IMG/VR virus record: IMGVR_UViG_3300005826_000294
Coordinates: 186,001-250,000 of that record
Strand: one strand, 5' to 3'
Length of the DNA stretch: 64,000 bases
The translations under genes and the position numbers were made by a program. The notes beneath the pieces are model-generated. The model worked only from the letters and a program-made list of their open reading frames with translations. It had not been told where the DNA came from and searched no databases. Below are positions 12,459 through 46,767 of this stretch, piece by piece; within the stretch, counting starts at the first letter, position 1, and each line of letters starts with the position of its first letter.

Positions 12459-12818
12459 TTATTTTACCTCCAGCAATAAAGCTTTAAGTTCCTGTATTGT
12501 TCTCTCTACCCTATATGCGGCTTTAATATTAGATAAATCTGCTAATTGTTCAGCTATTTTTTCTAAACCATAAATAAGTCTATTATTATTAGCAACTATC
12601 ATTTCTTTTTCAAAAGAATTATCAAGCAATTCATCGGCCGCATCGACAAGTTTCTTTTCATCACTCCAATCCTCCTCTTCCCACTTATTTTCATCTGTGG
12701 TAATAGGTTGATATGCCTCTGCTGAAGGATTTAAAACGTCATCAGCAAATTTTTCAAGTTCTTGCATAACTTCGCTCTTTTCCCATATAGCTCGATCTTC
12801 TCTTGAAAAAGTCATCAT
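12459..12818 (-). CDS. Small acidic protein with helical-hairpin tag
   Basis: LEKIAEQLADLSNIKAAYRVERTI. Confidence 0.6.
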   Translation of the reverse strand: MMTFSREDRAIWEKSEVMQELEKFADDVLNPSAEAYQPITTDENKWEEEDWSDEKKLVDAADELLDNSFEKEMIVANNNRLIYGLEKIAEQLADLSNIKAAYRVERTIQELKALLLEVK

Positions 12819-13966
12819 GCCTCCAGTAAATTCTCAAATTTATCTATATATTTATATTCAATTCCAAATGTTTTCTTATGACATTTTATACATAAACATA
12901 TTCCATTATTTATATCATATTTCTCATCTTTATTACAATCTCTAAAAGGCTTTATATGATGTGCTTGTAGCTTAATTCCTGTATTGTCAATAAATCCGCA
13001 CTCTTTACAACAAAACCTATCTCTTTTTAATATCTTTGTTCTCCAAATACCTTTTTTATCTAATGCTTCAGGTAAAGAAAACTTAATATTAAAACATCTC
13101 TTAAAAGTATTTTCATCTTTTTTTAACTTTAAACATTTAGATTTATTAACTATTTGTTTTCTAGTTTTATTAGGAAATAATATTTCTAATTCATCTATAG
13201 TATTGGAACTATAATTATGTTTTAATAATGATATTTCTTTATTACTCCAAAGCAAACTTTGTTTCTTTAATCCAAGTTTTTTAGCCATTCTTCTTATTTG
13301 CCTTCTACTTCTATCAGGCAAATTTTTCATTAAAAAAATATAATGTTTATTACTATAATTATTCTTTAAAAAAATAATTTCTTTATTAGTCCAATTATTC
13401 CTTTTATTTCCAAATAATTTGTTTCTTTTGGTTTTTATAGCACAAACACTTCTATTTAACTTTTTAGAAATCTCTTTATCGGTGTATCCTTTTTTCAACA
13501 AATTCTGCAATAAGTTAATTTCATTTTCTTTCCAATTTCCCTTAGAAAATTTATAAATTTTTATTCTTTCTTTTATTGTTTTCTTTGTTCTTCCAAGATA
13601 CTTAGATATTTCATCAATAGAAATGTTTTTGTTATAAAGATGTTTTAATAATAATATTTCTCTATTTTCCCATTTTTTTAATTTCTTTAATCCTAATTGC
13701 TTTGCCTTAATTCTAATAGATGTAATACTACGATTTAAAATTGAAGATATTTCATTTCCAGTCATAGATAAATAATTTTTAACAAGAAAATCAATTTCTT
13801 CTTTATTCCATCTAGAGGATTTTGCTCTATTAGATAAATCATTATTTATTATTAGATTTAGTTCTTTAGCAATATTATAAAGTTTATATATTGAAATATT
13901 TAAATTATTTGATAATTCTTTTCTAGACATACTATTCCAATTAGACTTTATATAATCTATAACCAT
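12815..13966 (-). CDS. Free-standing HNH endonuclease with N-terminal Myb/SANT-like Trp repeats
   Basis: Repeats W(N/T/S)xxEIxxL; C-terminal CKECG...LQAHHIKPF...NGICLCIKCH. Confidence 0.8.
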   Translation of the reverse strand: MVIDYIKSNWNSMSRKELSNNLNISIYKLYNIAKELNLIINNDLSNRAKSSRWNKEEIDFLVKNYLSMTGNEISSILNRSITSIRIKAKQLGLKKLKKWENREILLLKHLYNKNISIDEISKYLGRTKKTIKERIKIYKFSKGNWKENEINLLQNLLKKGYTDKEISKKLNRSVCAIKTKRNKLFGNKRNNWTNKEIIFLKNNYSNKHYIFLMKNLPDRSRRQIRRMAKKLGLKKQSLLWSNKEISLLKHNYSSNTIDELEILFPNKTRKQIVNKSKCLKLKKDENTFKRCFNIKFSLPEALDKKGIWRTKILKRDRFCCKECGFIDNTGIKLQAHHIKPFRDCNKDEKYDINNGICLCIKCHKKTFGIEYKYIDKFENLLEA

Positions 13967-14649
13967 AAAAACTCAATAGAACCATCTAAAGCACTAGGAG
14001 GTCCTACTACCATAGCAATTCCTGGATGGTTTTCCGTTAGTTGTCTAGTAGTAAGTTTCCCTTCTTCATTAACAAAAAGTGTAGCATTTAACGGGTACCT
14101 CTGTAAGGGATCAAACTGATCTGTAGAAAAAATACCTCTTTGAAACCATATCGTAACTCTATTGCTACCTATAGTCGTATCATCACCTGGTAAATTAGGA
14201 ACTTGATAAACATAATTAATAATAGTTTTTACACTATCATATTGTCCATCACTATTTTCATCCCAGTTTAATTTGCTTCCAGCAGGAAGAGTAACAATTC
14301 CATTTATTGGATTAAGAATTAAACCTTCATAATCAGCAATAAAACTTGAAGGCATAAGCCCAGCATTATTTAGTTCTTGTTTAGCATCTTCACCAGTATA
14401 AAAATTATAACCATCTGTCTGAATATCTACACCACGAATAATAACTATTTCATTATAAATTGTTTGTGTAAATGAATGGGTACGAATATCATCAATTATT
14501 CCAATTGGAGCTTTCCCGTCTGAAAGTCCAACAACAATATCTTGTCCTATTAATTTCATCTGACCTATCTGACCAGGTTGAAACGTAGATGAAATATCAA
14601 CGGGATAGGAAATTGGAAGGCCATTACCAGACTGGATAATCTTAAGCAT
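13957..14649 (-). CDS. Putative capsid decoration/cement protein paralog
   Basis: Shares QSG, GxIG, G(L/I)(Y/F)..D and L(Y/F)....G.LT with 6192..6845. Confidence 0.5.
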   Translation of the reverse strand: MLKIIQSGNGLPISYPVDISSTFQPGQIGQMKLIGQDIVVGLSDGKAPIGIIDDIRTHSFTQTIYNEIVIIRGVDIQTDGYNFYTGEDAKQELNNAGLMPSSFIADYEGLILNPINGIVTLPAGSKLNWDENSDGQYDSVKTIINYVYQVPNLPGDDTTIGSNRVTIWFQRGIFSTDQFDPLQRYPLNATLFVNEEGKLTTRQLTENHPGIAMVVGPPSALDGSIEFLWL

Positions 14650-14658
14650 TTTTACTCC

Positions 14659-14862
14659 TTATTTATTAGGGCTTTTTGTCTTACCATAACGCTTATAAAT
14701 CTGAACACGTTTTTTATCACTTAATTCATTATCCCAAATATCCCCAACAATCTTATTAACTCTTTTCATAGAATAATCTGGGTTTTTCTTTTTTACTTCT
14801 TCTTTCATCTCATCAAACCATCCCTTTGGAGCTTTATGCTCAGCACCTACAGGACTTTTCTC
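14659..14862 (-). CDS. 67-codon -1-frame continuation of 14847..15557 (frameshift extension or homopolymer error)
   Basis: Open frame EKSPVGAEHKAPKGWFDEMKEEVKKKNPDYSMKRVNKIVGDIWDNELSDKKRVQIYKRYGKTKSPNK*; its TAA overlaps the GGAG RBS of the next gene. Confidence 0.65.
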   Translation of the reverse strand, partial: EKSPVGAEHKAPKGWFDEMKEEVKKKNPDYSMKRVNKIVGDIWDNELSDKKRVQIYKRYGKTKSPNK

Positions 14863-15557
14863 TTTTTTTTTTGAGCTAATTTTGTTAAAGCTTCATCAAT
14901 TAAATTAGCAATATCATTAAAACCTTTTCCATCAAGGATATCAGCTACTTTAACTAAATGATTCATAGCAAAATCGGCAGCAACCATAGACTTTGCATCC
15001 CATGCCATCTCTACGGGCTCTTCATCTTCATCCTTCTTTAATTGACCACAAAGAGCACAAGAATCATCAGCAGGAACTACGGTTCCAGGCATCCCGTGAC
15101 CTTTTAGTTCATTAAACTTAGAATTGGCAGCTTCTTCAGCAGATTCGGCCTGGGCATCAGACATTCCAGGTTTATATGTATTTAATAATTCCATTACTTG
15201 ATTAGCATCTTCAGCTCTCGACAATAAATCCATAAATTGAGAATATGGAGTCTGATCTGAAGCATCATTAGTCATAGGAATAGTAGTCCCTGGACCACCC
15301 TTTGCAGATTCTCTTATTCTTACAGCTTCTTCAATAGTTCCGGGAAAAGAATTTTCCTCAGCTTCTAATTTTGCTTGATATTTATTCCAAAACTCATCAG
15401 CTTTTCTTGGATTTGTTTCAATAACTCTTTTAAACTCAACTAATACAGGACCACCTGCTTTTTTATCAAAAGCCTGTTTTACAAAATCTGCTCCAAGAGC
15501 ATTAGCCATGGCTTCAGCAATTTCGTTTGCGTTTTCAATCTTAAGACTGGTAGACAT
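14847..15557 (-). CDS. Virion-associated protein with helical-hairpin tag; ends just after an A10 run
   Basis: LVKVADILDGKGFNDIANLIDE; CAA AAA AAA AAG near the stop. Confidence 0.65.
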   Translation of the reverse strand: MSTSLKIENANEIAEAMANALGADFVKQAFDKKAGGPVLVEFKRVIETNPRKADEFWNKYQAKLEAEENSFPGTIEEAVRIRESAKGGPGTTIPMTNDASDQTPYSQFMDLLSRAEDANQVMELLNTYKPGMSDAQAESAEEAANSKFNELKGHGMPGTVVPADDSCALCGQLKKDEDEEPVEMAWDAKSMVAADFAMNHLVKVADILDGKGFNDIANLIDEALTKLAQKKKRKVL

Positions 15558-15574
15558 TTATGCCTCCTATTTGT

Positions 15575-15964
15575 TTATTTGCAATCTTTACAATCTGTTA
15601 ATGTAGCAAATTTTTGAAGAGTTTTATCTAAAATATTGGCAACTTCTACAAAACCTTTTTGATCAAGATCATCGGCAATTTTTGCTATACATTGTATGGC
15701 GAATTCAATTCCAGCTGTTTTATCATCAGCTTGAGAACCACATTTTGATTTAACTACATAATCATAAATTTTCTTTTTCTGGAAATCTTCGACAGGAACC
15801 CTAGCAGCAGAAGGATCATGATTTTTTAATGTTTCACAATCTAATGTATCTAAAAAATTTTTATACTCATCTAAAGAAATATATGTAATTTTAGCAGTCT
15901 TTTCAAGACTTTTTTCCATATCATAAAGAAGTCCATCATAATTTTTAGAATATGTATTAACCAT
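15575..15964 (-). CDS. Small protein with helical-hairpin tag
   Basis: IAKIADDLDQKGFVEVANILDK. Confidence 0.6.
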   Translation of the reverse strand: MVNTYSKNYDGLLYDMEKSLEKTAKITYISLDEYKNFLDTLDCETLKNHDPSAARVPVEDFQKKKIYDYVVKSKCGSQADDKTAGIEFAIQCIAKIADDLDQKGFVEVANILDKTLQKFATLTDCKDCK

Positions 15965-16148
15965 CAGTTTTATCCGCCTTTTTTCTACTATTAATTATCA
16001 TAGTTTTTCTTTTGGGTCGCCCAGGAGACCATATTTTATCATAATAGTCAAAATATCCTTCAATCTCTTCTGGTAATAACCCAAAATCTTTCAAAGATAT
16101 TGCATCTAACGCTCTTTCTTTTTTTGTAAATCTCATATCAGTCCTCAT
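15957..16148 (-). CDS. Hypothetical small protein
   Basis: Fills gap in operon, AAGGA upstream, overlaps next gene. Confidence 0.45.
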   Translation of the reverse strand: MRTDMRFTKKERALDAISLKDFGLLPEEIEGYFDYYDKIWSPGRPKRKTMIINSRKKADKTDG

Positions 16149-16164
16149 TTTTTTATAAGGAAAT

Positions 16165-16194
16165 AACCTTGGGAGTTTTTACACTCCCAAGGTT
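16165..16194 (-). terminator. 12-bp hairpin after protease/scaffold gene (weak U-tract)
   Basis: AACCTTGGGAGT-GTAAAA-ACTCCCAAGGTT. Confidence 0.5.
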
Positions 16195-16201
16195 TTAGAT
16201 A

Positions 16202-19200
16202 TTAATCAAATAACTTATTAAGTTGCCCAGTTAAATCAACTGAATCACTTGATACTTCACTAAAATCTTCATTAATTCCAACATTTAATGCTGGAGAGGC
16301 AGTTTTAGTAGAAGTTGGTTTAGATACGCGAGCTAAGGCTCTCTTAAAAGATTCAAAACTCTTATCATCAAAATTCATAATCTCATCAACCTGAGCATGT
16401 AATGCAGAAACATCACTAGCAATAAGTTCTTTTTCCTGCATACTTAGAGCAATATCATAAGCTCTACGCATTCTAATCTTTTCTTCATCTAAACTTGCTT
16501 GAACCTTCTTTTTAGTAAACTCTTTAGTAAGTTCTCCACCAAATTCAGAACTCTTCTTATCTCCCTCTCCAAAATAACCTTTCCAATATTTTGCAGCCTC
16601 AGGATCAACAGCAAGTGCCTTTAGTTTTTCAACATTATCAAGTTCATTCATATTAAGTTTTCCAGACTTTAATAAATTACCGAGATGATTCATTGCTTCT
16701 CTTACTTTTGGAAGATTTTGAACCTGCTTTAAAATTTCTTCATGCATCTCTACAATTCCCTCAACAACAGCTTCATTACTATTTATATCAAGCTGTCCAA
16801 GTTGCTGACTTCTACCAATAGGCATATCAGTATCAACGGTTGTCTGAGAATCTAATGAAAGTTGATATTTTGCACCAACCTCAGATGCTACTTTTTCACG
16901 CCATGAACGACGAGCAGAAGCAGACTTACTACACATCTCTTCTTCTTCTTCATCATCAGCCTGAAAATCATCAGCCTGAAAATCATCAAGCATTTGGGCT
17001 AATTCCGCATCTAAAGCATCCATGTCCATATCTTCTGCTTTTTCTTGAAAGATCTCTTCTTCATCAACTTCAAGATTTCCAAGACCATGTTCTTCTTCTT
17101 CCTTTTCCTTAGCAACAAACTTTTCAATTCCACCAAATGGAGAGAAAATCTCATCTAATATTTTTTTAACTTCATCTTTTTTTACTTCATCAATACCAAG
17201 ATCCTCTTCTCCCATAGCTTCTTTAGCAAGTTTACGACGATTATCAGCACGAGCTTTTAAAAGATCTTCTACTAGTAATTCAGCTTTACTCTTCTTGCTC
17301 TTCTTTTCTTCTTTTACTTCTTCCTCATCTTTTTTACTCTTCTTCTTTGGAGGAAATGTTTTCTCTTCCTTATCACTCTTCTTGCTCTTCTTTTCCTCAT
17401 CCTTCTCACTCTTCTTGCTCTTCTTTTCCTCGTCCTTCTCGTCCTTCTCACTCTTCTTGCTCTTCTTTTCCTCGTCCTTTTCACTCTTCTTCTCTTCTTT
17501 ATCACTCTTCTTGGCTTTCTTTGCTTTTACAATTAAAGAAGCCTGACTACGAAGTTCTACACTTGTATCAATAGCTTCAGAGGTTAAACGAAGTAGTTCG
17601 GAAGTAATAGGATCATTAGCACTCTGGCCACTCTTTACACGACCCTCAAGAGACTCGGCAAGCATAGCAAGTTCATCTGCACTTTCATCAAGACCAGAAT
17701 AAAGATCCTTAACATCTTCTTCATCTTCATCATATTCTTCATCATCTGCTTCAGAAATACCAGAAGTATCAAGATCAGCATCCTCACTCTTCTTACCAGA
17801 AAGTTCTTCACAAGCTTTCTCTAGATCACCAAGAGCTTTCTCAACTTCCTCAAGATGCTCGCTGGCGGCACTTAAAGCTGCCTTTACTGGATCTTCATCC
17901 TTATCACTAGGCATTTCTTTTTCATCTTTTGGCTCTGGTAGAGGCATTGGTGCTTCTGCTCCAGGCATAGGTGCTTCTGCTCCAGGCATAGGTGGCATCT
18001 CAGGAGGTGGTTGTGCTTCTTTTGTTAAAGTAATACCTTTAAGATAATATGCTACTTTACCAATTCCATCCTCACGGATTGCACGAAGAACCTCACGACC
18101 CCACTTTTTACTGGCCAAAACTTCCCAATTCTCATTTAATTCATCCTCATAAATCTCTGCTCCAGTAGCCTCAAGAATCTTTTCTGGACCAGCATAAATC
18201 TCCCAACGAGAATTTGGCTTATCAATTATAGTTTTATCTTCATTTTTATAAGCAACAACAAATTTGGCACGAAGCTGAGCACGAAGTAGCTTTTGTTTAA
18301 GAGCTTCTTCATTTCCATAACTTTCATAGCCAGGATGCATACCATCACTTCCAGATTCCATTCCCTGACCTTCCATTTGCTTATCACCCTTAGTTTTCAA
18401 CTGATCATTAGTAGGATCAACTGAATAGGTTTGAGGCTCATTTACACCGCCTCCACCTTGCCAATATGCTTCTTTCTTTGTGGTTTTTCCAACCATCTTT
18501 ACAAGATCTCTCGCATGTTGAATAACAGCATCATCTACAGCCTGCCAAGTTCCATCATTACTTAATGAGATAACAGTACCATCAGGAAGTTTTGCTACAG
18601 TTTTAGCTCCAACTTGTTTTGACTCAAGTTTTTCAGCTTCTTCAGCATTCTTCATAAGAGAATGTCTTGCATTCTTACGTTCATCCAATTCTGCTCTTGA
18701 AAGCATTTTCTTTAGATTTTCCTCTGACTGACCGAAACTATCATACCCAGGGTGGAGGCCCTCGCTTCCAGGCTCCATTCCCTGACCTTCCATTTGTTTG
18801 TCGCCCTTTGTTTTCAGCTGATCATTAGTAGGATCAACTGGATAGGGAGTAGTGGCAGGATCATTTACTCCACCGCCGCCCAAATGATAGGCGCTCTTAA
18901 ACATAGCACGTCGGGCTGCAGCCCTTTCACGAAGCTCTTTTCCAGACATTGATTGCTCCTCCTTGTTTGTTGTAGCTTTCTGGGCACCTGTCGCCATATC
19001 CCGAAGTGCAGTCTCCATAGCGCCCAGTTTTTTATTAATATTTGTAATAGTATTTTCCAAACTCACATTAGCAAGTCTGTTTCCTTCCATAGACCACTCG
19101 GGTGGTCCCGTATCATTTCCCTGTCCTGTATAACCTTTGCCAGTATCTCCCATTTCTGTTGTGCTTTGAGTAGCACTGGCTGGCTCTACTTCAACAGGTT

Positions 19201-20263
19201 TTTCATCAGTTAATAATTTATCTAAAGCTTTAAGTAAATTGTTTCTCGCATCTTCAGATAAATCTGGATTTTGTAATAAAGTATTAACTCTTATTGCTTC
19301 ATCAAGATTTGTGCTATTAAATGAAGCGACTCTATTTATAGCACTATCAAAAGATCTTTTAAGATCTATAAATTCATTTTCTAACCGCTCAAGTTCACCA
19401 GGAGTGACACATCCGGCAGCTCTAAGCATTTGAATTCTATCATTCTTTTCTTCCGAATATTTATTTAAACTCGCAATAACATTTCTTAATTTCGCTTGAG
19501 GATCTGCTCCTGTCACTACCAAACTTAATTCAATAGGAGAGAGATCAATATTTATTTCTCCATAAGTAGTCCTATTACGAACATGATCACAATAATCAGA
19601 TTCTACTTTTGCTATATTACCACATTCATAACATATTGACTTACCAACTGCAGTACCCATAGAAACATTATTAGCATATCCAGAAGAAACTTTTCGTGCT
19701 AAATCAGGATAATTAATTTTATCTAAAGCACAAAGTCCAATTACTCTTTTATATTTATCATCATAATAAGTATCTACAATAATTCCTCTAATTCCATCAA
19801 CAGAAGAACTTTGATGATCTTTACATAAAGGACGACCAATCCATTTACGATATGCTTTTTTTAATTCTGCTTCTGGGAAAATATCCCCATTGTTATTTTT
19901 ATATGGTCTTAAATTTGGATCCGAACATTTCCATTTCCAAGAACCAGTTTTTTTATCTATGATCCATTCAGCTTGAACAGGATTTCCTGAAGCATCCTTT
20001 TTTATTTTACCATCAGAATCAACAAGAGAAGCTTCTGAACTATGAAGCATAATACAACTAAAATAAATAAAATCTTTAGCTCTTGGAGCTACTTTTTTGA
20101 GATTATTAGCAAATTTCTTAAATCTAATTTTAACTTCATTATCAAGATCCGAGATTTCTGGATTAAAAAGGCGATTTTTTAAATTATTTTTTTTATCCAA
20201 AAAACTACTAGAATAAACCTCTTGAAGTGTAAAATTAGATTCAGCAAATTTAATTATTGACAT
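16202..20263 (-). CDS. Prohead (maturation) protease fused to long scaffold-like region
   Basis: GDIF..EL...W...PL..DH, GIIVD, NVSMG, IELSLV..GADP.A motifs of HK97/herpes assemblin-like serine proteases; then low-complexity acidic, Pro-rich and Lys-rich coiled regions. Confidence 0.8.
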   Translation of the reverse strand: MSIIKFAESNFTLQEVYSSSFLDKKNNLKNRLFNPEISDLDNEVKIRFKKFANNLKKVAPRAKDFIYFSCIMLHSSEASLVDSDGKIKKDASGNPVQAEWIIDKKTGSWKWKCSDPNLRPYKNNNGDIFPEAELKKAYRKWIGRPLCKDHQSSSVDGIRGIIVDTYYDDKYKRVIGLCALDKINYPDLARKVSSGYANNVSMGTAVGKSICYECGNIAKVESDYCDHVRNRTTYGEINIDLSPIELSLVVTGADPQAKLRNVIASLNKYSEEKNDRIQMLRAAGCVTPGELERLENEFIDLKRSFDSAINRVASFNSTNLDEAIRVNTLLQNPDLSEDARNNLLKALDKLLTDEKPVEVEPASATQSTTEMGDTGKGYTGQGNDTGPPEWSMEGNRLANVSLENTITNINKKLGAMETALRDMATGAQKATTNKEEQSMSGKELRERAAARRAMFKSAYHLGGGGVNDPATTPYPVDPTNDQLKTKGDKQMEGQGMEPGSEGLHPGYDSFGQSEENLKKMLSRAELDERKNARHSLMKNAEEAEKLESKQVGAKTVAKLPDGTVISLSNDGTWQAVDDAVIQHARDLVKMVGKTTKKEAYWQGGGGVNEPQTYSVDPTNDQLKTKGDKQMEGQGMESGSDGMHPGYESYGNEEALKQKLLRAQLRAKFVVAYKNEDKTIIDKPNSRWEIYAGPEKILEATGAEIYEDELNENWEVLASKKWGREVLRAIREDGIGKVAYYLKGITLTKEAQPPPEMPPMPGAEAPMPGAEAPMPLPEPKDEKEMPSDKDEDPVKAALSAASEHLEEVEKALGDLEKACEELSGKKSEDADLDTSGISEADDEEYDEDEEDVKDLYSGLDESADELAMLAESLEGRVKSGQSANDPITSELLRLTSEAIDTSVELRSQASLIVKAKKAKKSDKEEKKSEKDEEKKSKKSEKDEKDEEKKSKKSEKDEEKKSKKSDKEEKTFPPKKKSKKDEEEVKEEKKSKKSKAELLVEDLLKARADNRRKLAKEAMGEEDLGIDEVKKDEVKKILDEIFSPFGGIEKFVAKEKEEEEHGLGNLEVDEEEIFQEKAEDMDMDALDAELAQMLDDFQADDFQADDEEEEEMCSKSASARRSWREKVASEVGAKYQLSLDSQTTVDTDMPIGRSQQLGQLDINSNEAVVEGIVEMHEEILKQVQNLPKVREAMNHLGNLLKSGKLNMNELDNVEKLKALAVDPEAAKYWKGYFGEGDKKSSEFGGELTKEFTKKKVQASLDEEKIRMRRAYDIALSMQEKELIASDVSALHAQVDEIMNFDDKSFESFKRALARVSKPTSTKTASPALNVGINEDFSEVSSDSVDLTGQLNKLFD
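17330..17520. repeat. Coding tandem repeats (KKSKKSEKDEE-type) in scaffold
   Basis: Repeated tcactcttcttgctcttcttttcctc units. Confidence 0.8.
18330..18895. repeat. Two ~55-aa internal repeats in scaffold
   Basis: AY..GGGGVN.P...Y.VDPTNDQLKTKGDKQMEGQGME.GS.G.HPGY.S.G twice. Confidence 0.85.
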
Positions 20264-22520: not shown

Positions 22521-22751
22521 CTAGAAAGGATCGCCTGTATCAAAAAAGAATGGACTAACAGTCATACCGCCTATTGGTTCCTCTGGCTTTGTATCTCCAC
22601 GTAATCCAACAATATTTACAACGGAACTTACATCGCATTCCTCATTTTCTTCATCTTCGAGTTCAGATAGAATTTGATACACATCCATTGCTGAATGTAT
22701 AAATCCATGACTAATTAACTCATTAAAAAGATTGGAAATTATCTTTTTCAT
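22521..22751 (-). CDS. Hypothetical small protein
   Basis: ATGA overlap with upstream gene; degenerate hairpin tag. Confidence 0.55.
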   Translation of the reverse strand: MKKIISNLFNELISHGFIHSAMDVYQILSELEDEENEECDVSSVVNIVGLRGDTKPEEPIGGMTVSPFFFDTGDPF

Positions 22752-25700
22752 CCAACACCTCCAAATGGTGGAGTCATACTCATAATTGGATTAACATTTC
22801 TAGCAGTATCTAACCATGTTTCATATCTAGGAAAAATATCTTGGAATCCTCTTAATGGTTGATCAGTAGGAGTTGGAACAAAAGCATCTTGTTCTATAAT
22901 TTCAGGGTTTTTATATGGACAATTTTCTATTTCTTCAATTATTTTACGAATTTGTTTTGTATCTACTGGTGTTGGATCTTTTCCCATTTCACTAAACCAT
23001 TCAATTAAATTAACAAAAAAATCCTTAAAACCATATGCCTTTGCTTCTAAATAAGCATCTTTATTGCTCCATCCACCTTCTGTTCTAAAACGGGCTATAA
23101 CCCCTCCTGTTCTATCTGCTCCAAACCAACAATGAATATAAGTAGGTTTTTCTAATAATAATTCAGATATTCTATCTCCAAGTATCTTTCTTCCATAATC
23201 CTCTGATGATCCAGTTTCTATTGGAGCAGGAATATGATCCATGCCTATTTCTCCACACATTCTTCCAATTTCAGGATTATTATGTAAAGAAATAACACGC
23301 TCTACCCCCATATCTTTAAGGGTCTGTAATTGTTCTAAATTATCAATCATTCCACCACGGTATAATTTTTTAGGAACCACAATTCCAAAATTTCTTGGAA
23401 GTTTGTCAAATTTTCCTAATTTTGATAATGTTTTTCTATCTAATTTTCCGGTAGGTTTTAATCCATTAATAACCTGTAAGCAAGCAAGATTGAGAACTTC
23501 ATCCTCAGATATACATTTTGAATTTAACATTCCAATTAATTTAATAGCTTTTGTATCATTTATAGCTTTTTTATTAAACTTTATCGCATCTTTAATTTCT
23601 AAAATAACGGGATGAATTACAGGATCCATAAAAAGATCTATTCCTTTTTTTACTATATCATATTTTTTATTTAAAGCACAATATGTTGTAAATTCTAAAT
23701 CTGGTTCCGTCATTGATTCAGCAGGAAAATATTTATTTCTAATTTCATCTAATTTAAGACTAGCATCAATAGCCATATTTGGGAAAAGACCAGTCATATG
23801 TCTTTTAGTTTCTGCTTCTGTTTCAGATTCTCCTTTAAATCTATGACTAGGATTAATAATTTGTTCTGGATTTTTTTCTGGACCAATATGAACTCCCTCA
23901 TGAATTAAAGTTTCTACTAATGCTTTTTCTGTAGCTTGTTCTAATTGTTGAGCATTTGGTTGAGTAGATCCAAACATTCTCTTTACTTGTTCATTAATAC
24001 GATTTTTAAATATATGAACTTCTCTAGGATCTTTTCCAGGACCCATTTCTACATGCCCGAGTTGTCCAGGGCCTCCTTCAGGATGAACAATTATCTTTAT
24101 AATATTATTTTTTATATGAGGTGGAAGTTTAGCCAAAGCTTTTGCTACAGCAGTATCATATGGTTCTATAAGTATTTGAGCCCCTGGTGTTTTTACTTCT
24201 AAATCTTGAGCATCTTTGATAAAATACTTATTTATCCATTCAGCTCTTTCTTCAGGATCCATTTCTTCCATAATATCAATCTCATACAAAGTCATTTCAG
24301 ATCTTTTACGCTTTGGTTTGTTCTTTTTTTCTTTTTCTATTTGTTTTGCTAAATTGTCCCAATATTCTTCAAAGCCTTTCATCTCTTCATCATTGAAACC
24401 CTCAAATACTTCATCATGATCTTCATTAGCTCGTTTTGATAATTTAAAATTTGCTTGTTTTTTACCAAGATCAATCTCAGCAATTTTATCACCGCCAGCA
24501 AAAAATACTACATTTTTTGCCTTCCATTTTGGTAATTTTTCTAATGAAGGTAGTTCGACATTATAATCATCAATATAACCAATAGTTATATGAGGAACCC
24601 ATCCATGTTCCGATGGTAAATCAATAATATTACTAATAGCATCTTGAAGATCATTCTGTAAAGCATTTAATCCAACAGAATTAGGAATAAAAAATATTGG
24701 AACTCCATCATCTCCCTTAGAAAACATTCCTGTTCCCGCTATATACATAGATAATGGTTTATGATGAGAACATACTTTTTCAACAGATTTTATTATTGCT
24801 TTTCTTGTTATATTATCAATATCTTTTGCTTTTCCAAGATAAATAAGAGTTATATGTAATCCATCAGAACTTACACCTTCACCAATAAATTTATTTAACT
24901 TTTTAGGAACCATAATAGCAATCATAGCACCAGTATGTTTTTCTTTTGCTATTTTCAATAACTCTTCTTCATTATATCTATTTTTCCAAAATGAAAGTTT
25001 ATGCTCATCTTCTTCGTTTCCCCATAACAGAAGTTCTTCTTTAAGAGATGCTACTTTTCCAGATGATAAATATGTTTCTATTGTATTAGGAAGAATGTAT
25101 TGATTTTTTAGAGTACTTGGTTGGTGCCCTAGGTCTTTTGAAACATTTTCCAAAGCATTATTAAGTTCTTCCTTTAATTTTTTCTCCTTTTCTTTTTCTT
25201 CTTTTGGAAGAGTTCCTTTTCTTTGCTTTTTTAATTCTTTTTTTAACAAACTATTTGCCTCAGCACCACGAATATCTTTTGCAGTAATCTTAAATTTTTT
25301 CAAATACTTATTAACCATTTTTGGTGTAATTGTAAAAACTTTATCACCCTTTTTTTTATCTTTTATTAACTCTTTTAAAGCACTAACAGTTTCTTTATTA
25401 TTAACAATTTTTTCCTGATCTACACCAGATTTGCCGACATACTTAATTTTCGCTTTTCCACCAGAAAAAGTTATATGCTTAACTAACCAAGTTGTCACAC
25501 CATAATGTTTTCTTTCATCAGCAGAAAATTCATTACCAATTCTTTCTTTTGTATCATAAATTAAAGAAACAGCAATAGCAATCTGCTTGATTTCATCATC
25601 ATCAGATTTTAAATCTTCTTTAATCTTTTTAAGCAAATCAGAAACATTTTCTTCTAACTGTTTTATTTTCTTTTCTTTTTTCTTCCAACGCCTTTTTACC

Positions 25701-25801
25701 CACTTTTCATCATAAATATATGTAATGTTTCCACTTTCTTCTTCTCTTTTTTCAACATAATTTTTTGCTCGTTTTGAAAGATAAAACATATTAATCTCCA
25801 A
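22748..25801 (-). CDS. Multi-domain enzyme: topoisomerase IB core + 2H phosphoesterase + HExxH + PG-binding + Cys-dependent (Tyr/dual-specificity) phosphatase (likely start 25789)
   Basis: RIGN, YVGK, AKDIR, LGH, QY (TopIB catalytic set); HITL and HITI; LIHEGVH; GLKPTGKLDRKT; HCWFGADRTG. Confidence 0.85.
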   Translation of the reverse strand: MEINMFYLSKRAKNYVEKREEESGNITYIYDEKWVKRRWKKKEKKIKQLEENVSDLLKKIKEDLKSDDDEIKQIAIAVSLIYDTKERIGNEFSADERKHYGVTTWLVKHITFSGGKAKIKYVGKSGVDQEKIVNNKETVSALKELIKDKKKGDKVFTITPKMVNKYLKKFKITAKDIRGAEANSLLKKELKKQRKGTLPKEEKEKEKKLKEELNNALENVSKDLGHQPSTLKNQYILPNTIETYLSSGKVASLKEELLLWGNEEDEHKLSFWKNRYNEEELLKIAKEKHTGAMIAIMVPKKLNKFIGEGVSSDGLHITLIYLGKAKDIDNITRKAIIKSVEKVCSHHKPLSMYIAGTGMFSKGDDGVPIFFIPNSVGLNALQNDLQDAISNIIDLPSEHGWVPHITIGYIDDYNVELPSLEKLPKWKAKNVVFFAGGDKIAEIDLGKKQANFKLSKRANEDHDEVFEGFNDEEMKGFEEYWDNLAKQIEKEKKNKPKRKRSEMTLYEIDIMEEMDPEERAEWINKYFIKDAQDLEVKTPGAQILIEPYDTAVAKALAKLPPHIKNNIIKIIVHPEGGPGQLGHVEMGPGKDPREVHIFKNRINEQVKRMFGSTQPNAQQLEQATEKALVETLIHEGVHIGPEKNPEQIINPSHRFKGESETEAETKRHMTGLFPNMAIDASLKLDEIRNKYFPAESMTEPDLEFTTYCALNKKYDIVKKGIDLFMDPVIHPVILEIKDAIKFNKKAINDTKAIKLIGMLNSKCISEDEVLNLACLQVINGLKPTGKLDRKTLSKLGKFDKLPRNFGIVVPKKLYRGGMIDNLEQLQTLKDMGVERVISLHNNPEIGRMCGEIGMDHIPAPIETGSSEDYGRKILGDRISELLLEKPTYIHCWFGADRTGGVIARFRTEGGWSNKDAYLEAKAYGFKDFFVNLIEWFSEMGKDPTPVDTKQIRKIIEEIENCPYKNPEIIEQDAFVPTPTDQPLRGFQDIFPRYETWLDTARNVNPIMSMTPPFGGVG

Positions 25802-39833: not shown

Positions 39834-42800
39834 TTATACTCCTGCTCCAGGTCCAAGAGGTGGTGGAGTCATTCCGCCACCTTCAGCACCACCACCGCCT
39901 ACCATTTCACCAGGTGGTGGTGCTAGTTCAGGAAGACCACCAGGAGCCACTCCACCCATTCCTCCCGTTCCTCCCATTCCTAAATCTCCACCAGCTTCAG
40001 GAGGTGTCATTTGACTCCTTTCTTTACTATCAATTGGTTCCATAATAGGCTTCTCAGGATCAAGAGATCTTAATTCTGTTAAACTCATTCCAGATAAAGA
40101 GTTTTCTTCTCTCATTTTTATTGCCTTATCAATTGCTTCTCTTCTCATTTTTATTTTTTCATCTTCATAAGATATTCCCAAACTCTTATAAAGAGATTGA
40201 ACAGAAGCCTGCCCAGCACTAACCATTCCTGTTATATTACTAATATAATCCTGTAAATCATATAAATTCATTTGGTTCCATTCAATTTCTGGAACAATTA
40301 AATGTTTTTCTTTATTCCTGTATTCATAGAAACCTTGAATTTCACTAATGGGAGCAAATATCTTATTTATAAGCCATCTAGCAATCATATTACGAAAATT
40401 AAAATATCTTTGTCTTAAAACTTCTAATCCAATTGATGCTGAAGAGTATACAGCACTTTCAGTATCTATAACTGCAGGGGGAACCATTAATCCTGTATAA
40501 ATATTTTTAGTAATAAATTCAAGATCACTAGCAATATCTAATACTTGACCAGAAAATCCTACCCTCTCTACAGTTACACCAGCATGAGTTATAATTTTAG
40601 CATCTTTATCATATTGCGCTTCTTCAAACATTTGTCTATAAAACTCTAAATCTTCTTGAGTTGCCCTATATTCTCCTTCAGTATTTCCACCAACTTTAAT
40701 TAGTGTAACAGGATTAATCATACCATCTGCTTGAGCAAATTTGCTATTTCCCTGGATAGTCATTAATCCATTATTTCTAGTGATAAAAAGACCATTTGAA
40801 ACTTCAAAACAAAATACCCTTCCATTATAAGGAATTTTTTCAATTGAAGCTCCATTGTAATTATTATTTCCATAAATTACTGGTTCTTTTCCATAATTTG
40901 AATCAGACCAAGTAATTAAATAAAATTCTTTACCATATCCATTTTTATCTACTATTAAATGAGGAGCATATCCACACTTAAATACTATCTCTTGAATATC
41001 ATCAGCAAGCCTCTTTGAAATAGTATTATAACGATATGCTGTTGATCCATTTTTATATTTACTTTCAATCTCAGAACCATCCCCTTTAACCAAAGCATTT
41101 AATAATATTTTTAACAATCTTGGAGACAATTGCTTCGTCCAAAAAGGAACATGTTTATTTCCAGAACCATATCCTATTTCATTCATAAAATGTTCAGCAA
41201 TTATTTTTCTAGAAATAGACCAAGTTGTAATATCATTGTTAGATGAATATCCTTGTTTATTTGCCGAAACATATTCTCCACAATGTAAATTAAGCATATC
41301 TGCTATTTTTATTATAGATTTTTTAATATACTTATAATCCTTAGAGTTGTTATTTTGGCATATACTAATTTTATAATTTTGAGTTTTATTATTATAATGA
41401 ATACAACCTTCAGAAATCATATATCCAAGAAATTCTAAATAGTCTTCTATAGGAATTTTTTGATCAAATAAATTAATATTAGATATTTCTTTTCCCACAT
41501 ATTTATCAATAGAGGCTTTTGATTTATAAAAACATCCTTTTTTAACATCCTCAGCTCTTACAAACTGAAAATCATTATATCCATTATAATGTGTCTTTTT
41601 CTTCGCTAACCACATTCTATGATTTGGAGTAACCATAATATCTATTTTTTTTCCATAGAAATGATATAATTCTCCATTAAATTCATAATCCGTACGATTA
41701 ATATATTTTTGAAACTCTAATTCTCCAGTTTCTTGATTCATTGTTGCTATTTCATCGTTTTTAGAAATATCATCATAAAACTTAAAACCATCTTTTGTCA
41801 ATACCTCAGTAGATACCGGGAAACATTCTCTTAACTTATCATAAAGCATTAGGTCTTTAAAAACGCTAACAATAATACTTGTTCCTCTTACATCATATGG
41901 ACTTGATAATATTTTTAAATGGGAAATGTTAAAATTATCTAATGGAATATCTTGTCCTGCTCTAATATGATATAAAATTTTCTCTGGGATTTGTTTTCTA
42001 AGTTGAGAATCAGCAGGATTATTGCTAAACACTAATCGTTGAAGAACAGCATCAGGTTTTAATGTAATAATAGGATCACCAGAGAGAACCGTCTTTTTAA
42101 CATGAACATAATCAGGATTTTGTATTACAATTTTTGACCATTTTCCTGTATTTTCATTAAGTTCGGCAAATGGAAAACAATTATGTACTGCCACTCCATT
42201 TGCCACATATGAATGATCATCTTCAACTTCAATATCATACATAAAGTTTTCATTAAATTTATTAGTTATATCTTCAACTTTCTTTATACTTAACATTTGC
42301 CAATTTTTATAAAGACTAGAATTAGGAGAACACCATTTTGTCTCTCTTAATAAATCATTCTTATTAGTTTTTAAATATGTTTTAAATTTATATGATTCAT
42401 TCGCAACTATCTTAATTCTATATTTATCAGATATATTATCTTTAGCATTAATTTTTGAACAAGTTGGATGAATACCTAATCTTCTTAACATAAGTGTAAA
42501 CTGATTAGCAAGATTTTTGGAAGAAGTAGAAATAATAATATGACCATTGCTTTGATCAATACAACCATCACCATCTATAAAACCAGCTAATAAATGTTTT
42601 TGTAATTCAATAGGCAAAGACATTATTGTCTCGCTTAATTGTTTTTCTTTACTATATTCTCCACAATGCTCCATAAAAAACTCTGCTATTTTATGACCAT
42701 TGCGTTTTTTACTTCTTAATAAATGATCACATTTATTAGAGTTTCTACTCACATATGTTGTTCCAGAAAATCCAAAACATTTTTTTAATAAAGGAGAAAG

Positions 42801-44042
42801 ATTATCATCTATAAATTTTTTATCATAACTTGTAAATTTTATTCCATCATAATCTTTTTTAGATTTACAATAACACCCCTCAGCAAGCCAAAATCCCATA
42901 ATATAACATAATTCTGAATTAAAATTATCTTCTTCATCAGAATTAAATGGAGAATATACTATATCATTAATTTTAATATTATTTGTTTCAATAAATTCTG
43001 GACTAATATCTCTATTATGTATTTTTCTACAATTACTACATTGTTTTCTTCTTGGAAGAATTCTAATTTTTTTATTATTACATGAAGGAGTATCACATTT
43101 AATATTATCTAAACTAGTATGTAAAATTGGATGTTTTCCACTTATAATTAATGATTCAGGAAGACCAACAACAGAAATTTTATAAACTTTTAAATGTTCT
43201 TCTTTAACAACATTTGTAGGTTTGATAAATTTATTAATTACTTTCTTTTTATTTCCTAAATGGGTTAGAACAATATCACCTATTTCTATTTCAGCTATAG
43301 GCTTTACAGATCCATCCGCCATAGTAATTAAAGAAGATCCTTTTATTTTTTCACCTAACTTCCAATATTCTAAAGAAATATCCGAAAGAGCACTGACTAA
43401 GTCCATTTCTTCAATCATAGTTTCAAAAAAATCTAAAACTCTCTTATCTTGACATTTTAAATTCAATTTACTAATTGGATATGTTGAATGAAGAGTAATG
43501 GCATTTCTAACTATAGGATGAAGTTGAAAAAAGTTTCTGCACCAAGCATTAATTGTTAATTTATCTCTAGGCAAATTAAGATTTGCCATAGTAAATAAAG
43601 GACTATATACTTCTGGAGCCAAACGTTCATATGAAGACCCTGCTGAGGTCCCAACACCAACAGAACCAACTCCCGAAGATCCTAATGTGGATTGTTTAAT
43701 TAAAGTACTTGCTTTTAAAACTTCTTTTTCTATATGAGAGGCACTATGAACAATAGCACCAACAGCATTAGAGGTTTCTCGTGAAGAATAACTCCTACCA
43801 TCGGATCCTGGAAGCCAAGCACTCCTTTTTAATCCTTCATCATCCAAAGAAGCATTATGAATATTTTGAGGCATCTTGTTTAATCTACTACTTTCATAAC
43901 TTAACCCTTCCTTAATTAAACCTCTCTCAATATCACTTTCAATACTTGCTTTACGATATTCGGTCAGTCCAGATGCTCTCTTTGGATTTATTCTTAATTG
44001 CTCTTCTGAAGTTTTTGGTCTAGAACCTCTTTTAACTATCAT
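39834..44042 (-). CDS. Portal protein with two inteins (652 aa after splicing)
   Basis: Directly downstream of terminase; exteins HPIVRNAITLH, EYWKLGE|CFPFAEL, IQNPDYV, RGTSII..VFKDL, LRE|SKFAQADG..NP. Confidence 0.8.
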   Translation of the reverse strand: MIVKRGSRPKTSEEQLRINPKRASGLTEYRKASIESDIERGLIKEGLSYESSRLNKMPQNIHNASLDDEGLKRSAWLPGSDGRSYSSRETSNAVGAIVHSASHIEKEVLKASTLIKQSTLGSSGVGSVGVGTSAGSSYERLAPEVYSPLFTMANLNLPRDKLTINAWCRNFFQLHPIVRNAITLHSTYPISKLNLKCQDKRVLDFFETMIEEMDLVSALSDISLEYWKLGEKIKGSSLITMADGSVKPIAEIEIGDIVLTHLGNKKKVINKFIKPTNVVKEEHLKVYKISVVGLPESLIISGKHPILHTSLDNIKCDTPSCNNKKIRILPRRKQCSNCRKIHNRDISPEFIETNNIKINDIVYSPFNSDEEDNFNSELCYIMGFWLAEGCYCKSKKDYDGIKFTSYDKKFIDDNLSPLLKKCFGFSGTTYVSRNSNKCDHLLRSKKRNGHKIAEFFMEHCGEYSKEKQLSETIMSLPIELQKHLLAGFIDGDGCIDQSNGHIIISTSSKNLANQFTLMLRRLGIHPTCSKINAKDNISDKYRIKIVANESYKFKTYLKTNKNDLLRETKWCSPNSSLYKNWQMLSIKKVEDITNKFNENFMYDIEVEDDHSYVANGVAVHNCFPFAELNENTGKWSKIVIQNPDYVHVKKTVLSGDPIITLKPDAVLQRLVFSNNPADSQLRKQIPEKILYHIRAGQDIPLDNFNISHLKILSSPYDVRGTSIIVSVFKDLMLYDKLRECFPVSTEVLTKDGFKFYDDISKNDEIATMNQETGELEFQKYINRTDYEFNGELYHFYGKKIDIMVTPNHRMWLAKKKTHYNGYNDFQFVRAEDVKKGCFYKSKASIDKYVGKEISNINLFDQKIPIEDYLEFLGYMISEGCIHYNNKTQNYKISICQNNNSKDYKYIKKSIIKIADMLNLHCGEYVSANKQGYSSNNDITTWSISRKIIAEHFMNEIGYGSGNKHVPFWTKQLSPRLLKILLNALVKGDGSEIESKYKNGSTAYRYNTISKRLADDIQEIVFKCGYAPHLIVDKNGYGKEFYLITWSDSNYGKEPVIYGNNNYNGASIEKIPYNGRVFCFEVSNGLFITRNNGLMTIQGNSKFAQADGMINPVTLIKVGGNTEGEYRATQEDLEFYRQMFEEAQYDKDAKIITHAGVTVERVGFSGQVLDIASDLEFITKNIYTGLMVPPAVIDTESAVYSSASIGLEVLRQRYFNFRNMIARWLINKIFAPISEIQGFYEYRNKEKHLIVPEIEWNQMNLYDLQDYISNITGMVSAGQASVQSLYKSLGISYEDEKIKMRREAIDKAIKMREENSLSGMSLTELRSLDPEKPIMEPIDSKERSQMTPPEAGGDLGMGGTGGMGGVAPGGLPELAPPPGEMVGGGGAEGGGMTPPPLGPGAGV
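40746..41825 (-). mobile_element. Intein 2 of portal (360 aa) with LAGLIDADG
   Basis: CFPVSTEVLTKDG ... TPNH ... LGYMISEG ... LVKGDG ... VFCFEV ... QGN|S. Confidence 0.9.
42180..43349 (-). mobile_element. Intein 1 of portal (390 aa) with LAGLIDADG; first residue Lys
   Basis: KIKGSSLITMADG ... SGKH ... GFWLAEG ... AGFIDGDG ... MYDIEV.DDHSYVANGVAVHN|C. Confidence 0.85.
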
Positions 44043-44053
44043 ACTATACTCCT

Positions 44054-45892
44054 TTAAAAATTCTTAGGTATATAAGCCAATACTGGTTTTGGAAATACTG
44101 AATTACTAGGTGTTTCTACATTAACTTTAAATCCTCTTGTTTTATCAAACTTATATGCTAAATATGCATACATTAAAGCCATAAGTCCATCATTCTGTAT
44201 TTTTCCTTTAATATATGTTTGATGAGGTTGCCCATGTCTCATAACAACTTTGCTCTCCATAGAACAACAATGAGCAACTAACCAAGAAATAGATTCATAA
44301 CTCGCCCAAGGAAAACGAAATCTACCTTTCCTTAATAATTCAAACATTTCTCCAATTATTTTATCTTTATCAATAACAACTTCTAATAAATCTCTATCAT
44401 ATTTTTGTCCGCCAGAAACCATACCAGAACTTCTAACAGATTTATATCTATCACCATAAATCCTTTTTAGCTCAATTGTAATATCATCGGCAAAACCAAT
44501 ATCGCCCATAGCACTTCTTACACCATATAAACGAAACATATTATCTACAAAAGACATTTTGCCTTGAATATCAAGTACTTTTAATTTTTTAGCAAATTCA
44601 ATTACAAATCTTTCATCATGTTCAACAGATAATATAACTCCACATGAAAATGATTGACCACGTTTAATTCCATCTATATCTGGTTTTCCTCCCCAGTCAC
44701 ATCCTAAATATACAACTTTTGACTCTCTATCTATATATTTAGACATAAATCTAGTAACATCTCTACTTGTTTGATATATTTCTTCTCTGGAAATCGGCAT
44801 TCCAGCTCCAGAATGAAACTCTCCTAAAACTTCATTATTATAAATCATTTCAGAATTTCTTGGATTATTTTCAGGTTTTTCTTTTAATATTATTTCTTTA
44901 GTAAAATTTGGAATAAGTAGTTGATTAAAATGAAATCCAACATAATCACAATCTTCTCTTCCAGGAGTTACTATCCATTTTCCTCGTTCAACAGCATGAA
45001 CTTTCTCTTGTTCACAGTTACAACTTGGACATTTCACAATATTCTCATATAACCATATATCTTTTTCCCACTTATCTGATCCAGGTGTATATAAAAGAAA
45101 ATATTTTCCGCAATCTTGACAACCTAAATAATAACGCCTCTGATCAGATGATTCCCAAAGTCTATGAAAAAATGTGCCTTTTTGTCTTGGAGTCCCAAAA
45201 TATACCTGAGTTCCACCAGGTTGAGGACCATATTGAGCATGAGTTAAACACTTAATAGTCTTGGCAATCGCAACTTCAGACATGTCTTGAACCTCATCAA
45301 AAAAACATACATCAAAAGTACGACCCAGAACTCTTGTCCCTTCATTTCCAATAGATTCACACCATAAAACATTTCCATGTTTAAATTGCTTATAATATAA
45401 ACTATCTGTTGAATCACGAAGACTATTCTTTTGAGCCTGTATATATGGTTTAAGTTTTCCAGGATGACGTGTATCATTGAAATCTTGTATTGGAGAAGAC
45501 TCCATAATCATTTTTTCTAATTTATCTTTAGAAAAGCCATGCATCATGTCTAAATGTGGAAAAGCATGTGTAACCCTTACAGGAGGAGTTCCACTAACAC
45601 CAAACATTCCACTCGCTACCATATATAATTCTAAAGCTGAAGCCATTACTGTTGCACCAACCTGCCTACCTTTTACAATAACAATAGGTTTTCCTTTTGA
45701 AGACATTGCTACTGTAACAATATGACGATATATATCAGCAATAAATTTCCAACCATTATTTGTTAATCTAAATGGTTTTCCATCTAAAGTTAAAAATGAC
45801 TCCGCAAAAGAAACGGGATCTACTTTTAAAAATTCCCGTTTTAAAGATATGAAACTATTTTCTGGAGTCCAATCTGAAAGATCACTCGCCAT
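44054..45892 (-). CDS. terL: Terminase large subunit (gpA-like); start at 45892 (TAATG overlap)
   Basis: KGRQVGAT Walker A, CFFDEVQD Walker B, FGTP, CQDC/CPSC Zn finger, YLGCDWGG and QNDGLMA nuclease motifs. Confidence 0.9.
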   Translation of the reverse strand: MASDLSDWTPENSFISLKREFLKVDPVSFAESFLTLDGKPFRLTNNGWKFIADIYRHIVTVAMSSKGKPIVIVKGRQVGATVMASALELYMVASGMFGVSGTPPVRVTHAFPHLDMMHGFSKDKLEKMIMESSPIQDFNDTRHPGKLKPYIQAQKNSLRDSTDSLYYKQFKHGNVLWCESIGNEGTRVLGRTFDVCFFDEVQDMSEVAIAKTIKCLTHAQYGPQPGGTQVYFGTPRQKGTFFHRLWESSDQRRYYLGCQDCGKYFLLYTPGSDKWEKDIWLYENIVKCPSCNCEQEKVHAVERGKWIVTPGREDCDYVGFHFNQLLIPNFTKEIILKEKPENNPRNSEMIYNNEVLGEFHSGAGMPISREEIYQTSRDVTRFMSKYIDRESKVVYLGCDWGGKPDIDGIKRGQSFSCGVILSVEHDERFVIEFAKKLKVLDIQGKMSFVDNMFRLYGVRSAMGDIGFADDITIELKRIYGDRYKSVRSSGMVSGGQKYDRDLLEVVIDKDKIIGEMFELLRKGRFRFPWASYESISWLVAHCCSMESKVVMRHGQPHQTYIKGKIQNDGLMALMYAYLAYKFDKTRGFKVNVETPSNSVFPKPVLAYIPKNF

Positions 45893-46767
45893 TATTTTCC
45901 CCATTTATATACAACTTTAAATCCAGCGTCTTCAAAAATTTTAAGCTTTTTTATAGTATTGTCATATAATTCTCCAAAAGTTTTTCCAATTATAGGATGT
46001 TTATCATTTCTATTGTATTTATCTGGATGTCCATGCCAAAAGTATCCAAAATATTCATAAATAATATTGTTTGTTTTATCAAACCCATCAACAAAAAATT
46101 TTTTATTGTTAATATTAATATAAACTTCTGTTTGAATAATTCCAATACTTTCAATCCATTTTTTACCTGATTTTGATATTCTTTTAGAACATAAAGAACA
46201 TCCTCTTCCACGAACTCTATCTTTTATTTTCGCTATCCATTTATGATTATTTTTACATTTCCAATGGACTACTTTATGACTTCCAGGTCTTACAGAATCA
46301 GGTTTAAAATTTTTTTCATCCCATTCTTTTGATAAAGTAGGATATAAATCTTTTAAAGAATTCCCATATCCTACTTTTCTACCATTACAATAAGGACAAT
46401 TACTATTTTTTCTATGTTTTACAGATTTTTCCCAAGAATGCCCAAATTTACATTTCCACCATACTTTTTTATAACTTCCTGAACTAATACATTCAGGATC
46501 AATAATATTTTTATCATAATCCCACTCTTTTAATAAATTACTATAAATTATTGAATCTTCTTTGGAAATTTTTACTCTAGTACAGTATGGACAACCATGG
46601 CCTTTGATTCTACTATAAACAATTGCTTCCCATTTATGATTGTTTTTACAAATCCATTTAATTCTTGATCTACTAACTAAAGATGTTATATCATAATTAT
46701 TACTTAAATCATATTCTTTTAATAGTTCAGGATATTCATTTAAGTTTATCATTAATTCTTTGAACAT
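45892..46767 (-). CDS. Free-standing putative endonuclease: three DUF4379-like repeats + Vsr/EDxHD-like nuclease
   Basis: KEWD...W.C...H.W...CP.C; VDGFD....IYEYFGYFWHG. Confidence 0.75.
   Translation of the reverse strand: MFKELMINLNEYPELLKEYDLSNNYDITSLVSRSRIKWICKNNHKWEAIVYSRIKGHGCPYCTRVKISKEDSIIYSNLLKEWDYDKNIIDPECISSGSYKKVWWKCKFGHSWEKSVKHRKNSNCPYCNGRKVGYGNSLKDLYPTLSKEWDEKNFKPDSVRPGSHKVVHWKCKNNHKWIAKIKDRVRGRGCSLCSKRISKSGKKWIESIGIIQTEVYININNKKFFVDGFDKTNNIIYEYFGYFWHGHPDKYNRNDKHPIIGKTFGELYDNTIKKLKIFEDAGFKVVYKWGK

Follow-up and report, generated by a model that had tools for sequence, protein, structure and literature searches.

A conserved poly-A recoding site that probably adds an HMG-box-like tail to a head-module protein in huge phages

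Why does a 236-codon open reading frame (ORF) in the head module of a huge estuarine phage end four codons past a run of ten adenines, when the -1 frame behind that run stays open and encodes a protein-like sequence? The gene lies at 14847..15557 on the minus strand (product P0001; 236 amino acids, aa) of a 64,000-base stretch of DNA, here called the window, which comprises bases 186001-250000 of a 301,683-bp IMG/VR virus record. Our analyses indicate that this is very probably a real and conserved recoding site with products of 236 and 299 aa, the longer of which ends in an HMG-box-like tail. Judged from the sequences compared below, the layout looks deliberate rather than like a sequencing error.

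The 3' end of the 0-frame ORF reads CAA AAA AAA AAG AGA AAA GTC CTG TAG (all positions in this gene refer to the minus strand). The proposed slip site is the A10 run at 14863..14872, and the G at 14862 completes the heptamer A_AAA_AAG at 14862..14868, in phase with codons 230-232; the 0-frame stop TAG (14847..14849) comes four codons past the slip site. The -1 frame (P0002, window 14659-14871) has 77 open codons in all, for which we obtained a chance of about 0.002 by a rough estimate that takes the base composition to give some 0.08 stops per codon. Its extension (14662..14862), 67 codons after three Lys codons, encodes a basic sequence (pI 9.7) that is accessible only through a frame change at the A run, so that the predicted products are of 236 aa and of 232+67 = 299 aa. 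The extension ends at a TAA (14659..14661) overlapping the ribosome-binding site (RBS) AAGGAG (14655..14660) that serves the next gene, which begins with an ATG at 14647..14649.

A frame slip at this run had been proposed in an earlier note made from the sequence alone, and its figures (products of 236 and 299 aa, an extension of 67 codons, a stop four codons on) all proved correct on re-reading, as did the overlap of the TAA with the next RBS. The note had also described only a weak GAGC/GCTC hairpin downstream. That hairpin is present, as part of a larger weak stem-loop predicted at 14815..14860 (-13.7 kcal/mol, z = -1.8) that is not conserved.

The evidence that carries the recoding site comes from relatives. 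A word-based protein search with the part of the protein ahead of the shift (the N-part) gave eight homologues, and junctions were read from the contigs of these homologues and from loci reached via the downstream 230-aa protein. Further loci came from a tail-profile search, and a final set from contigs whose small ORFs proved to be the tail in truncated form. In 12 non-redundant loci, the window included, the tail lies out of frame directly behind a run of A6-A18. The shift needed is -1 in nine of them, with A10 in the window, L009, L014 and L016 and other lengths in L013 (A8), L069 (A9), L067 (A18), L068 (A6) and L072 (A6), and +1 in the three others (L015, A11; L070, A10; L071, A9). In L068 and L072 the A6 sits inside A_AAA_AAG with the stop immediately after; the in-phase heptamer followed by an immediate stop is common to the short-run loci L068, L072 and L013, all of them -1. 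The comparison of homologues named in the earlier note thus returned the out-of-frame layout in 11 further loci, and fused forms as well. The tail is fused in frame in P0006/L003, L025, L027 and L056 and in several small proteins, and in three of the four fused loci (L003, L025, L056) the A run is interrupted to at most five A's. Loci L004 and L010 have neither the tail nor a long run.

The linker right after the run is conserved in the tail frame (YKTWKGK..PPKGA.HKAPKGW). When six out-of-frame copies were compared among themselves, dN was 0.17-0.40 and synonymous sites were saturated. Such low dN at saturated synonymous sites means that the tail has been translated throughout a long divergence despite being out of frame; at the level of substitution patterns, this shows the out-of-frame tail to be under purifying selection. 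The kept layout in 12 loci and the selected tail together lend the slip proposed in the earlier note its main support.

A tail translated out of frame could also be a gene of its own, and the earlier note had named an independent start as the outcome that would speak against a shift. Here the tail would be read from the internal ATG at 14806..14808, or by re-initiation, as a 49-aa protein, and gene callers do start an ORF there (14659..14808). ORFs of this kind, starting at the same conserved Met within helix 1 of the tail domain, are annotated in 23 clusters of a 5.8-billion-protein set (43-116 aa, with 20 of the 23 at 43-51 aa); all ten clusters that were examined, the window's own among them, proved to be truncated calls of the out-of-frame tail. 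One relative, L033, has a separate tail ORF whose GTG start overlaps the upstream stop. Against separate initiation, the invariant Trp and nearly invariant Pro-Lys of helix 1 are conserved upstream of the internal ATG and would be missing from a 49-aa product, the closest Shine-Dalgarno (SD)-like string is about 12 nt from that ATG, and 10 of the 12 loci contain no ATG, GTG or TTG in the tail frame ahead of the conserved PPKxW motif. Read across these loci, the frames show a tail that lacks a start codon of its own, and we regard a separate gene as the least credible of the explanations considered.

Locus L033 was excluded as a -1 case, since a stop in the tail frame directly follows its A7 run and the tail is broken again further on. 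Its separate tail ORF (L033:1764-2709; start and stop overlapping as GTGA) carries this second frame break inside the domain, and the tail is either decaying or mis-sequenced. Two other loci that look like chimeric contigs were left out: L035:3-305 joins the end of an HMG-like tail to a ribosomal-protein-L11-like stretch, and L026:2-632 joins one to an unrelated ORF. No match was found by tblastn of the N-part and the tail against 50,697 phage records, and a pattern scan of IMG/VR with the N-part gave no relative. A tail-profile scan of one genome per prokaryotic species returned nothing, and hence no host or prophage clue.

The second outcome that the earlier note had set against its proposal was a simple assembly error, with 11 A's in the true gene and a plain 299-aa fusion as its product. 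Errors are common in homopolymers, some relatives (P0006, L027) do have the fusion in frame, and the run length in the window is the one given by the assembly. Even so, an error of this kind is very unlikely: the same kind of break stands at the same place in 11 other non-redundant loci from different samples, the synonymous sites of these loci are saturated relative to one another, and second contigs of different length repeat the same run lengths (L015 = L028, L014 = L029). RNA contigs from an independent library match the window without differences where they overlap it; one such contig covers the A10 run and has its end at the run's edge.

The other long A runs of the record bear on the same point. 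Expected numbers of coding-strand runs were obtained for the 301,683-bp record by shuffling synonymous codons within genes. Observed counts were 79 against 144 for runs of at least A8, 13 against 55.6 for at least A9, 2 against 25.0 +/- 3.3 for at least A10 and 0 against 9.4 for at least A11, in a Lys-rich, AT-rich genome in which AAA makes up 83% of Lys codons. Counts so far below the shuffled expectation indicate that long A runs are strongly avoided and that this one has been kept at a gene end; the depletion is consistent with slippery tracts being selected against. The record has one further A10 run (window 492-501, minus strand), which is read in frame (RKKKE) within a Cys-rich endonuclease-like ORF and at which no alternative frame is open. 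All 12 coding-strand runs of at least A9 other than the slip site stand in intact ORFs, far from any stop, and the assembly therefore shows no general homopolymer damage. Taken together, these results rule out three general explanations: a one-off assembly error, a decaying pseudogene and independent initiation.

What does the frame change add? The extension encodes a predicted HMG-box-like three-helix domain at 14674..14835 (minus strand; residues 13-66 of P0002). The tail scored 28.0 bits against Pfam PF00505 (cut-off 25.4; E = 2.9e-6), which was also matched by 18 of 30 aligned members of the tail's own family at E <= 0.01, and a profile of that tail family retrieved only HMG boxes from the PDB (best E = 0.003). 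An AlphaFold2 (AF2) model of the tail had a mean predicted local distance difference test score (pLDDT) of 79.7, with helices at 16-29, 35-49 and 52-61. The best Foldseek rows for this model were HMG boxes, with weak E-values. When the model was aligned exhaustively to 48,161 PDB representatives, HMG boxes filled the first 16 rows, with a root mean square deviation of 2.4-2.9 A over 52-55 residues and Z values of 4.3-5.5, which are modest because the domain is small. On profile scores and the modelled fold, the tail is HMG-box-like. DNA binding and bending are predicted functions, and what speaks for minor-groove bending is the basic charge (pI 9.7).

The HMG-box fold is regarded as typical of eukaryotes, and no paper on a phage HMG box turned up in our literature search. 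The phage domain resembles the eukaryotic boxes of PF00505 (HMGB1, SOX, SSRP1, Abf2) in the aromatic residue of helix 1, the G..W..LS..(E/K)K pattern of helix 2, the three-helix fold, the basic composition and a Pfam score above the cut-off. It differs from them in being shorter, with a truncated helix 3, in having DNA binding only as a prediction, and in occurring in phages as a mobile module, attached to either terminus of proteins that are otherwise unrelated. Copies of this module were found at the N-terminus of larger phage proteins, on a ferritin-like protein (L069) and as small stand-alone proteins.

How might the frame be changed? For the A10 site we lean slightly towards RNA polymerase slippage that inserts one A as the main route, at a level of confidence just short of even. 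Eight of the 12 runs, at A9-A18, are longer than the slippery heptamer, and all three +1 cases have at least A9. The lack of a shared stimulatory structure and of an Rfam frameshift element points the same way. The +1 frame in three lineages needs two extra A's or one missing A, so that a simple -1 shift does not suffice. Runs of nine A or T yield mRNAs with extra bases in bacteria (PMC5009743), and the A10 run is a coding-region homopolymer of at least this length; four relatives have only A6-A8. Documented transcriptional slippage sites include Thermus thermophilus dnaX (A9), insertion sequence (IS) elements, Shigella spa13/mxiE and Citrobacter rodentium tssM (PMC5009743, PMC4256274). The phage site shares with them a homopolymer of nine or more A's inside a coding region, two length variants from one gene, no requirement for RNA structure, and access to both non-zero frames, which matches the -1 and +1 relatives. 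It differs in being read from sequence and not at the RNA level, in the A6 relatives, which are too short, and in that no late-gene phage polymerase was found in the 75%-complete record (PF00562 and PF00940 searched; a positive control for PF00940 gave no match, which makes this negative a weak one).

The other contributor, or the alternative, is purely ribosomal programmed -1 frameshifting, in which tandem tRNA-Lys(UUU) would slip on A_AAA_AAG and the extra A's would merely be Lys codons; we hold this to be a serious possibility, though a less probable main route than polymerase slippage. The heptamer is in phase at 14862..14868, and relatives with A6+G or A8+G have the same heptamer with an adjacent stop and are all -1. 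In one of these, L013, an 8-bp hairpin lies 7 nt downstream of the slip site. The record encodes four tRNA-Lys(UUU) genes of two sequence types, among nine tRNA genes, and no tRNA-Lys(CUU) gene. Three loci are not accounted for by this route, since L015, L070 and L071 require a +1 or -2 change, and the runs, mostly A9-A18, exceed the heptamer. Neither a conserved downstream structure nor an upstream SD was found, and ribosomal frameshifting without stimulators is usually inefficient. A_AAA_AAG is the most shift-prone heptamer in Escherichia coli (PMC5009743), and ribosome sliding on poly-A (PMC4363877) is a further possible route.

The nine tRNA genes form a cluster at G000:C1:4636-13695, on the minus strand and outside the window. 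A tRNA-like gene at 12512-12587 has an eight-base anticodon loop, in which ARAGORN reads the four-base anticodon gaaa; this may be a tRNA that decodes quadruplets, or the call may be false. In other relatives, L014 and L015 share a CUNRGU/ACYUGG hairpin that is absent from the window, and Rfam gave no frameshift element, only chance hits.

The closest relatives of the site among ribosomal systems are E. coli dnaX (gamma/tau) and the IS orfA-orfB pairs, which likewise have an in-phase A_AAA_AAG, products sharing an N-terminus and a nearby 0-frame stop. The phage run is A10 instead of A6+G. Furthermore, dnaX has an upstream SD and a strong downstream stem-loop, neither of which is conserved in the phage family, and its shifted product is the shorter one, whereas the phage shift adds a whole domain. 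Recoded extensions are known from phage structural genes, such as the T7 capsid proteins 10A/10B and the capsid and tail proteins of Listeria phage. The lambda tail chaperone G/GT is recoded as well (PMC5009743). The site described here is predicted to share their pattern, in which one gene for morphogenesis gives a major short product and a minor long one, at a fixed ratio, by a shift close to its 3' end. The gene described here is neither a capsid nor a tail chaperone gene; its slip motif is a different one, the added domain is of a nucleic-acid-binding type, and the phages are huge (>300 kb).

Both proteins could also be supplied at the level of DNA, if A10 were a hypermutable contingency locus and the population a mixture of A11 (fused) and A10 (short) genomes. 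Homopolymers of this size mutate fast by replication slippage. The relatives show all three frame states, with runs of A6-A18, and L027 is in frame with A10 and A9 runs. We consider such phase variation improbable. The A6 runs of L068 and L072 are too short for frequent replication slippage and their tails are still selected out of frame, runs of at least A8 are out of frame in 10 loci against in frame in 1, which is unexpected if states flip freely, and second contigs have identical run lengths. DNA-level variation or artefact takes the share of our confidence that is left besides the transcriptional and ribosomal routes.

The N-part is acidic (pI 4.5-4.7) and all-helical, with a conserved N-terminus. 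Its AF2 model (pLDDT 75, predicted template modelling score 0.37) ends in a helix-turn-helix at residues 188-235, followed by KKK. In Foldseek this model retrieved only generic helical proteins and no meaningful neighbour, and searches of Pfam, PHROGs, Foldseek and the Atlas gave no known scaffold or internal head protein that resembles the N-part in sequence or fold. The gene does lie in the head module, next to a prohead protease, and encodes a helical acidic protein, from which we infer a scaffold-like or internal head protein. Phage P22 gp8 is a scaffolding protein with a C-terminal helix-turn-helix coat-binding domain. Like the gp8-type scaffolds, the N-part is an acidic, elongated, all-helical protein encoded beside the prohead protease, with a conserved C-terminal helix-turn-helix and then basic residues. 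It is unlike them in having no sequence or fold match, and in that its motif occurs in at least five proteins of the phage, as would be expected of a docking motif held in common rather than of a single scaffold.

This motif of about 35 aa (L.K.AD.LD..G....A..ID) was traced by hidden Markov model search and tblastn. One of the proteins is a 129-aa paralogue encoded just upstream (15575..15964, minus strand) that has the same C-terminal helix-turn-helix; the others lie at window 53973-54848, 6962-8197, 12459-12818 and 9294-12458, and at G000:C1:283329-283550. In the relatives, the HMG-like tail is always joined just after such a motif, which may be a common docking or targeting motif.

A working model would run as follows. 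Standard decoding of 14847..15557 would give the acidic helical 236-aa head-module protein, and in a minority of expression events a frame change on the A10 run (14863..14872) would give the 299-aa trans-frame protein, whose last 55 or so residues would fold as a basic HMG-box-like DNA-binding domain. The short form would serve inside the head or in the manner of a scaffold, and the long form would add a few DNA-bending modules to the short-form assembly, in the capsid or on the ejected DNA.

Several points weigh against this interpretation. The 9:3 ratio of -1 to +1 loci is not significantly skewed, and L027, fused in frame, has A10 and A9 runs, which shows that long runs also occur outside the out-of-frame layout. 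No stimulatory structure is shared among six downstream regions, in which the folds are weak and different (z -1.4 to -2.1). The sequence was found only in two estuary metatranscriptomes, as contigs, and contigs drop minor run-length variants. The RNA contigs are 100% identical to patches of window 13500..17000, with no indel. A 157-nt RNA contig on 14863..15018 breaks off at the run's far edge, with 156 of its letters placed and one left over; its end could be a graph branch from run-length heterogeneity or a low-coverage end, is uninterpretable and was given no weight. The trans-frame protein and the heterogeneous mRNA are themselves predictions from the DNA. As to the N-part, it was left unplaced by Pfam, PHROGs and the ESM Atlas, and the basis for its proposed role is position and composition.

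The record as a whole is classed as a provirus by IMG/VR and is 75% complete according to CheckV. Its G+C content is 29.9% and nearly all of its genes are on the minus strand. An alternative genetic code was ruled out, since the standard code (table 11) gives a coding share of 94% for the record and all three stops are used (TAA 165, TGA 69, TAG 43).

The gene order in the window is large terminase, portal, two prohead-protease-like proteins, small proteins, the recoded gene and a 230-aa gene, and relatives have these genes in the same order. The large terminase is at 44054..45904. The portal ORF (39834..44042, minus strand; 1402 aa) is portal-like over aa 133-231 and again over 1110-1331, and the part between these segments has matches of endonuclease-like and other kinds, which suggests an intein or inserted mobile element. 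The two genes with prohead-protease-like domains are at 22748..25801 and 16202..20263 (minus strand). The latter encodes a 1353-aa protein in which this N-terminal domain precedes a long charged tail, and it marks the head-assembly module. A long repetitive Lys/Glu/Asp/Ser-rich stretch of this protein is encoded at window 17295-17546, and comparable K/D/E-rich tails occur in the N-part homologues P0003, P0009, P0010, L033 and L070, where they replace or precede the HMG-like tail.

Downstream of the recoded gene, the conserved 230-aa head-module gene (13957..14649, minus strand) served as synteny anchor; its product is 50-85% identical among relatives and gives a weak lead to lambda gpD-type decoration proteins. 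A 383-aa HNH gene (12815-13966) stands between it and the next conserved gene and is absent from that place in relatives. Homing-endonuclease genes of the HNH and LAGLIDADG types are numerous in the head and packaging module; besides this one they lie at window 3514-4401, 4774-5712, 20274-21750, 25791-27233, 28270-29133, 45892-46767 and 59396-60679.

The site adds a family-wide case of recoding for uncultured huge phages to a kind of system that is already known; what lifts it above the routine is its HMG-box-like payload, together with the natural series that its -1, +1 and fused forms provide. Gene callers systematically mis-annotate the recoded gene, splitting it into a short protein and an orphan ORF of 49 aa, as the 23 clusters attest. 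In this family, sites with the heptamer alone occur beside long A tracts, and -1 and +1 layouts beside in-frame fusions, which gives a natural series for separating ribosomal from polymerase slippage. As a speculation that we hold more doubtful than either route of slippage, poly-A slippage may serve as a dosing device that puts a small set number of DNA-bending HMG-box modules of eukaryotic type on an internal head or scaffold-like protein. These would form a histone-like organiser packaged or ejected with the genome, and A-tract length and frame would tune the dose between lineages, from fused to -1 to +1. If the HMG-like form is packaged, it would bear on how genomes of 300-400 kb are organised in their capsids.

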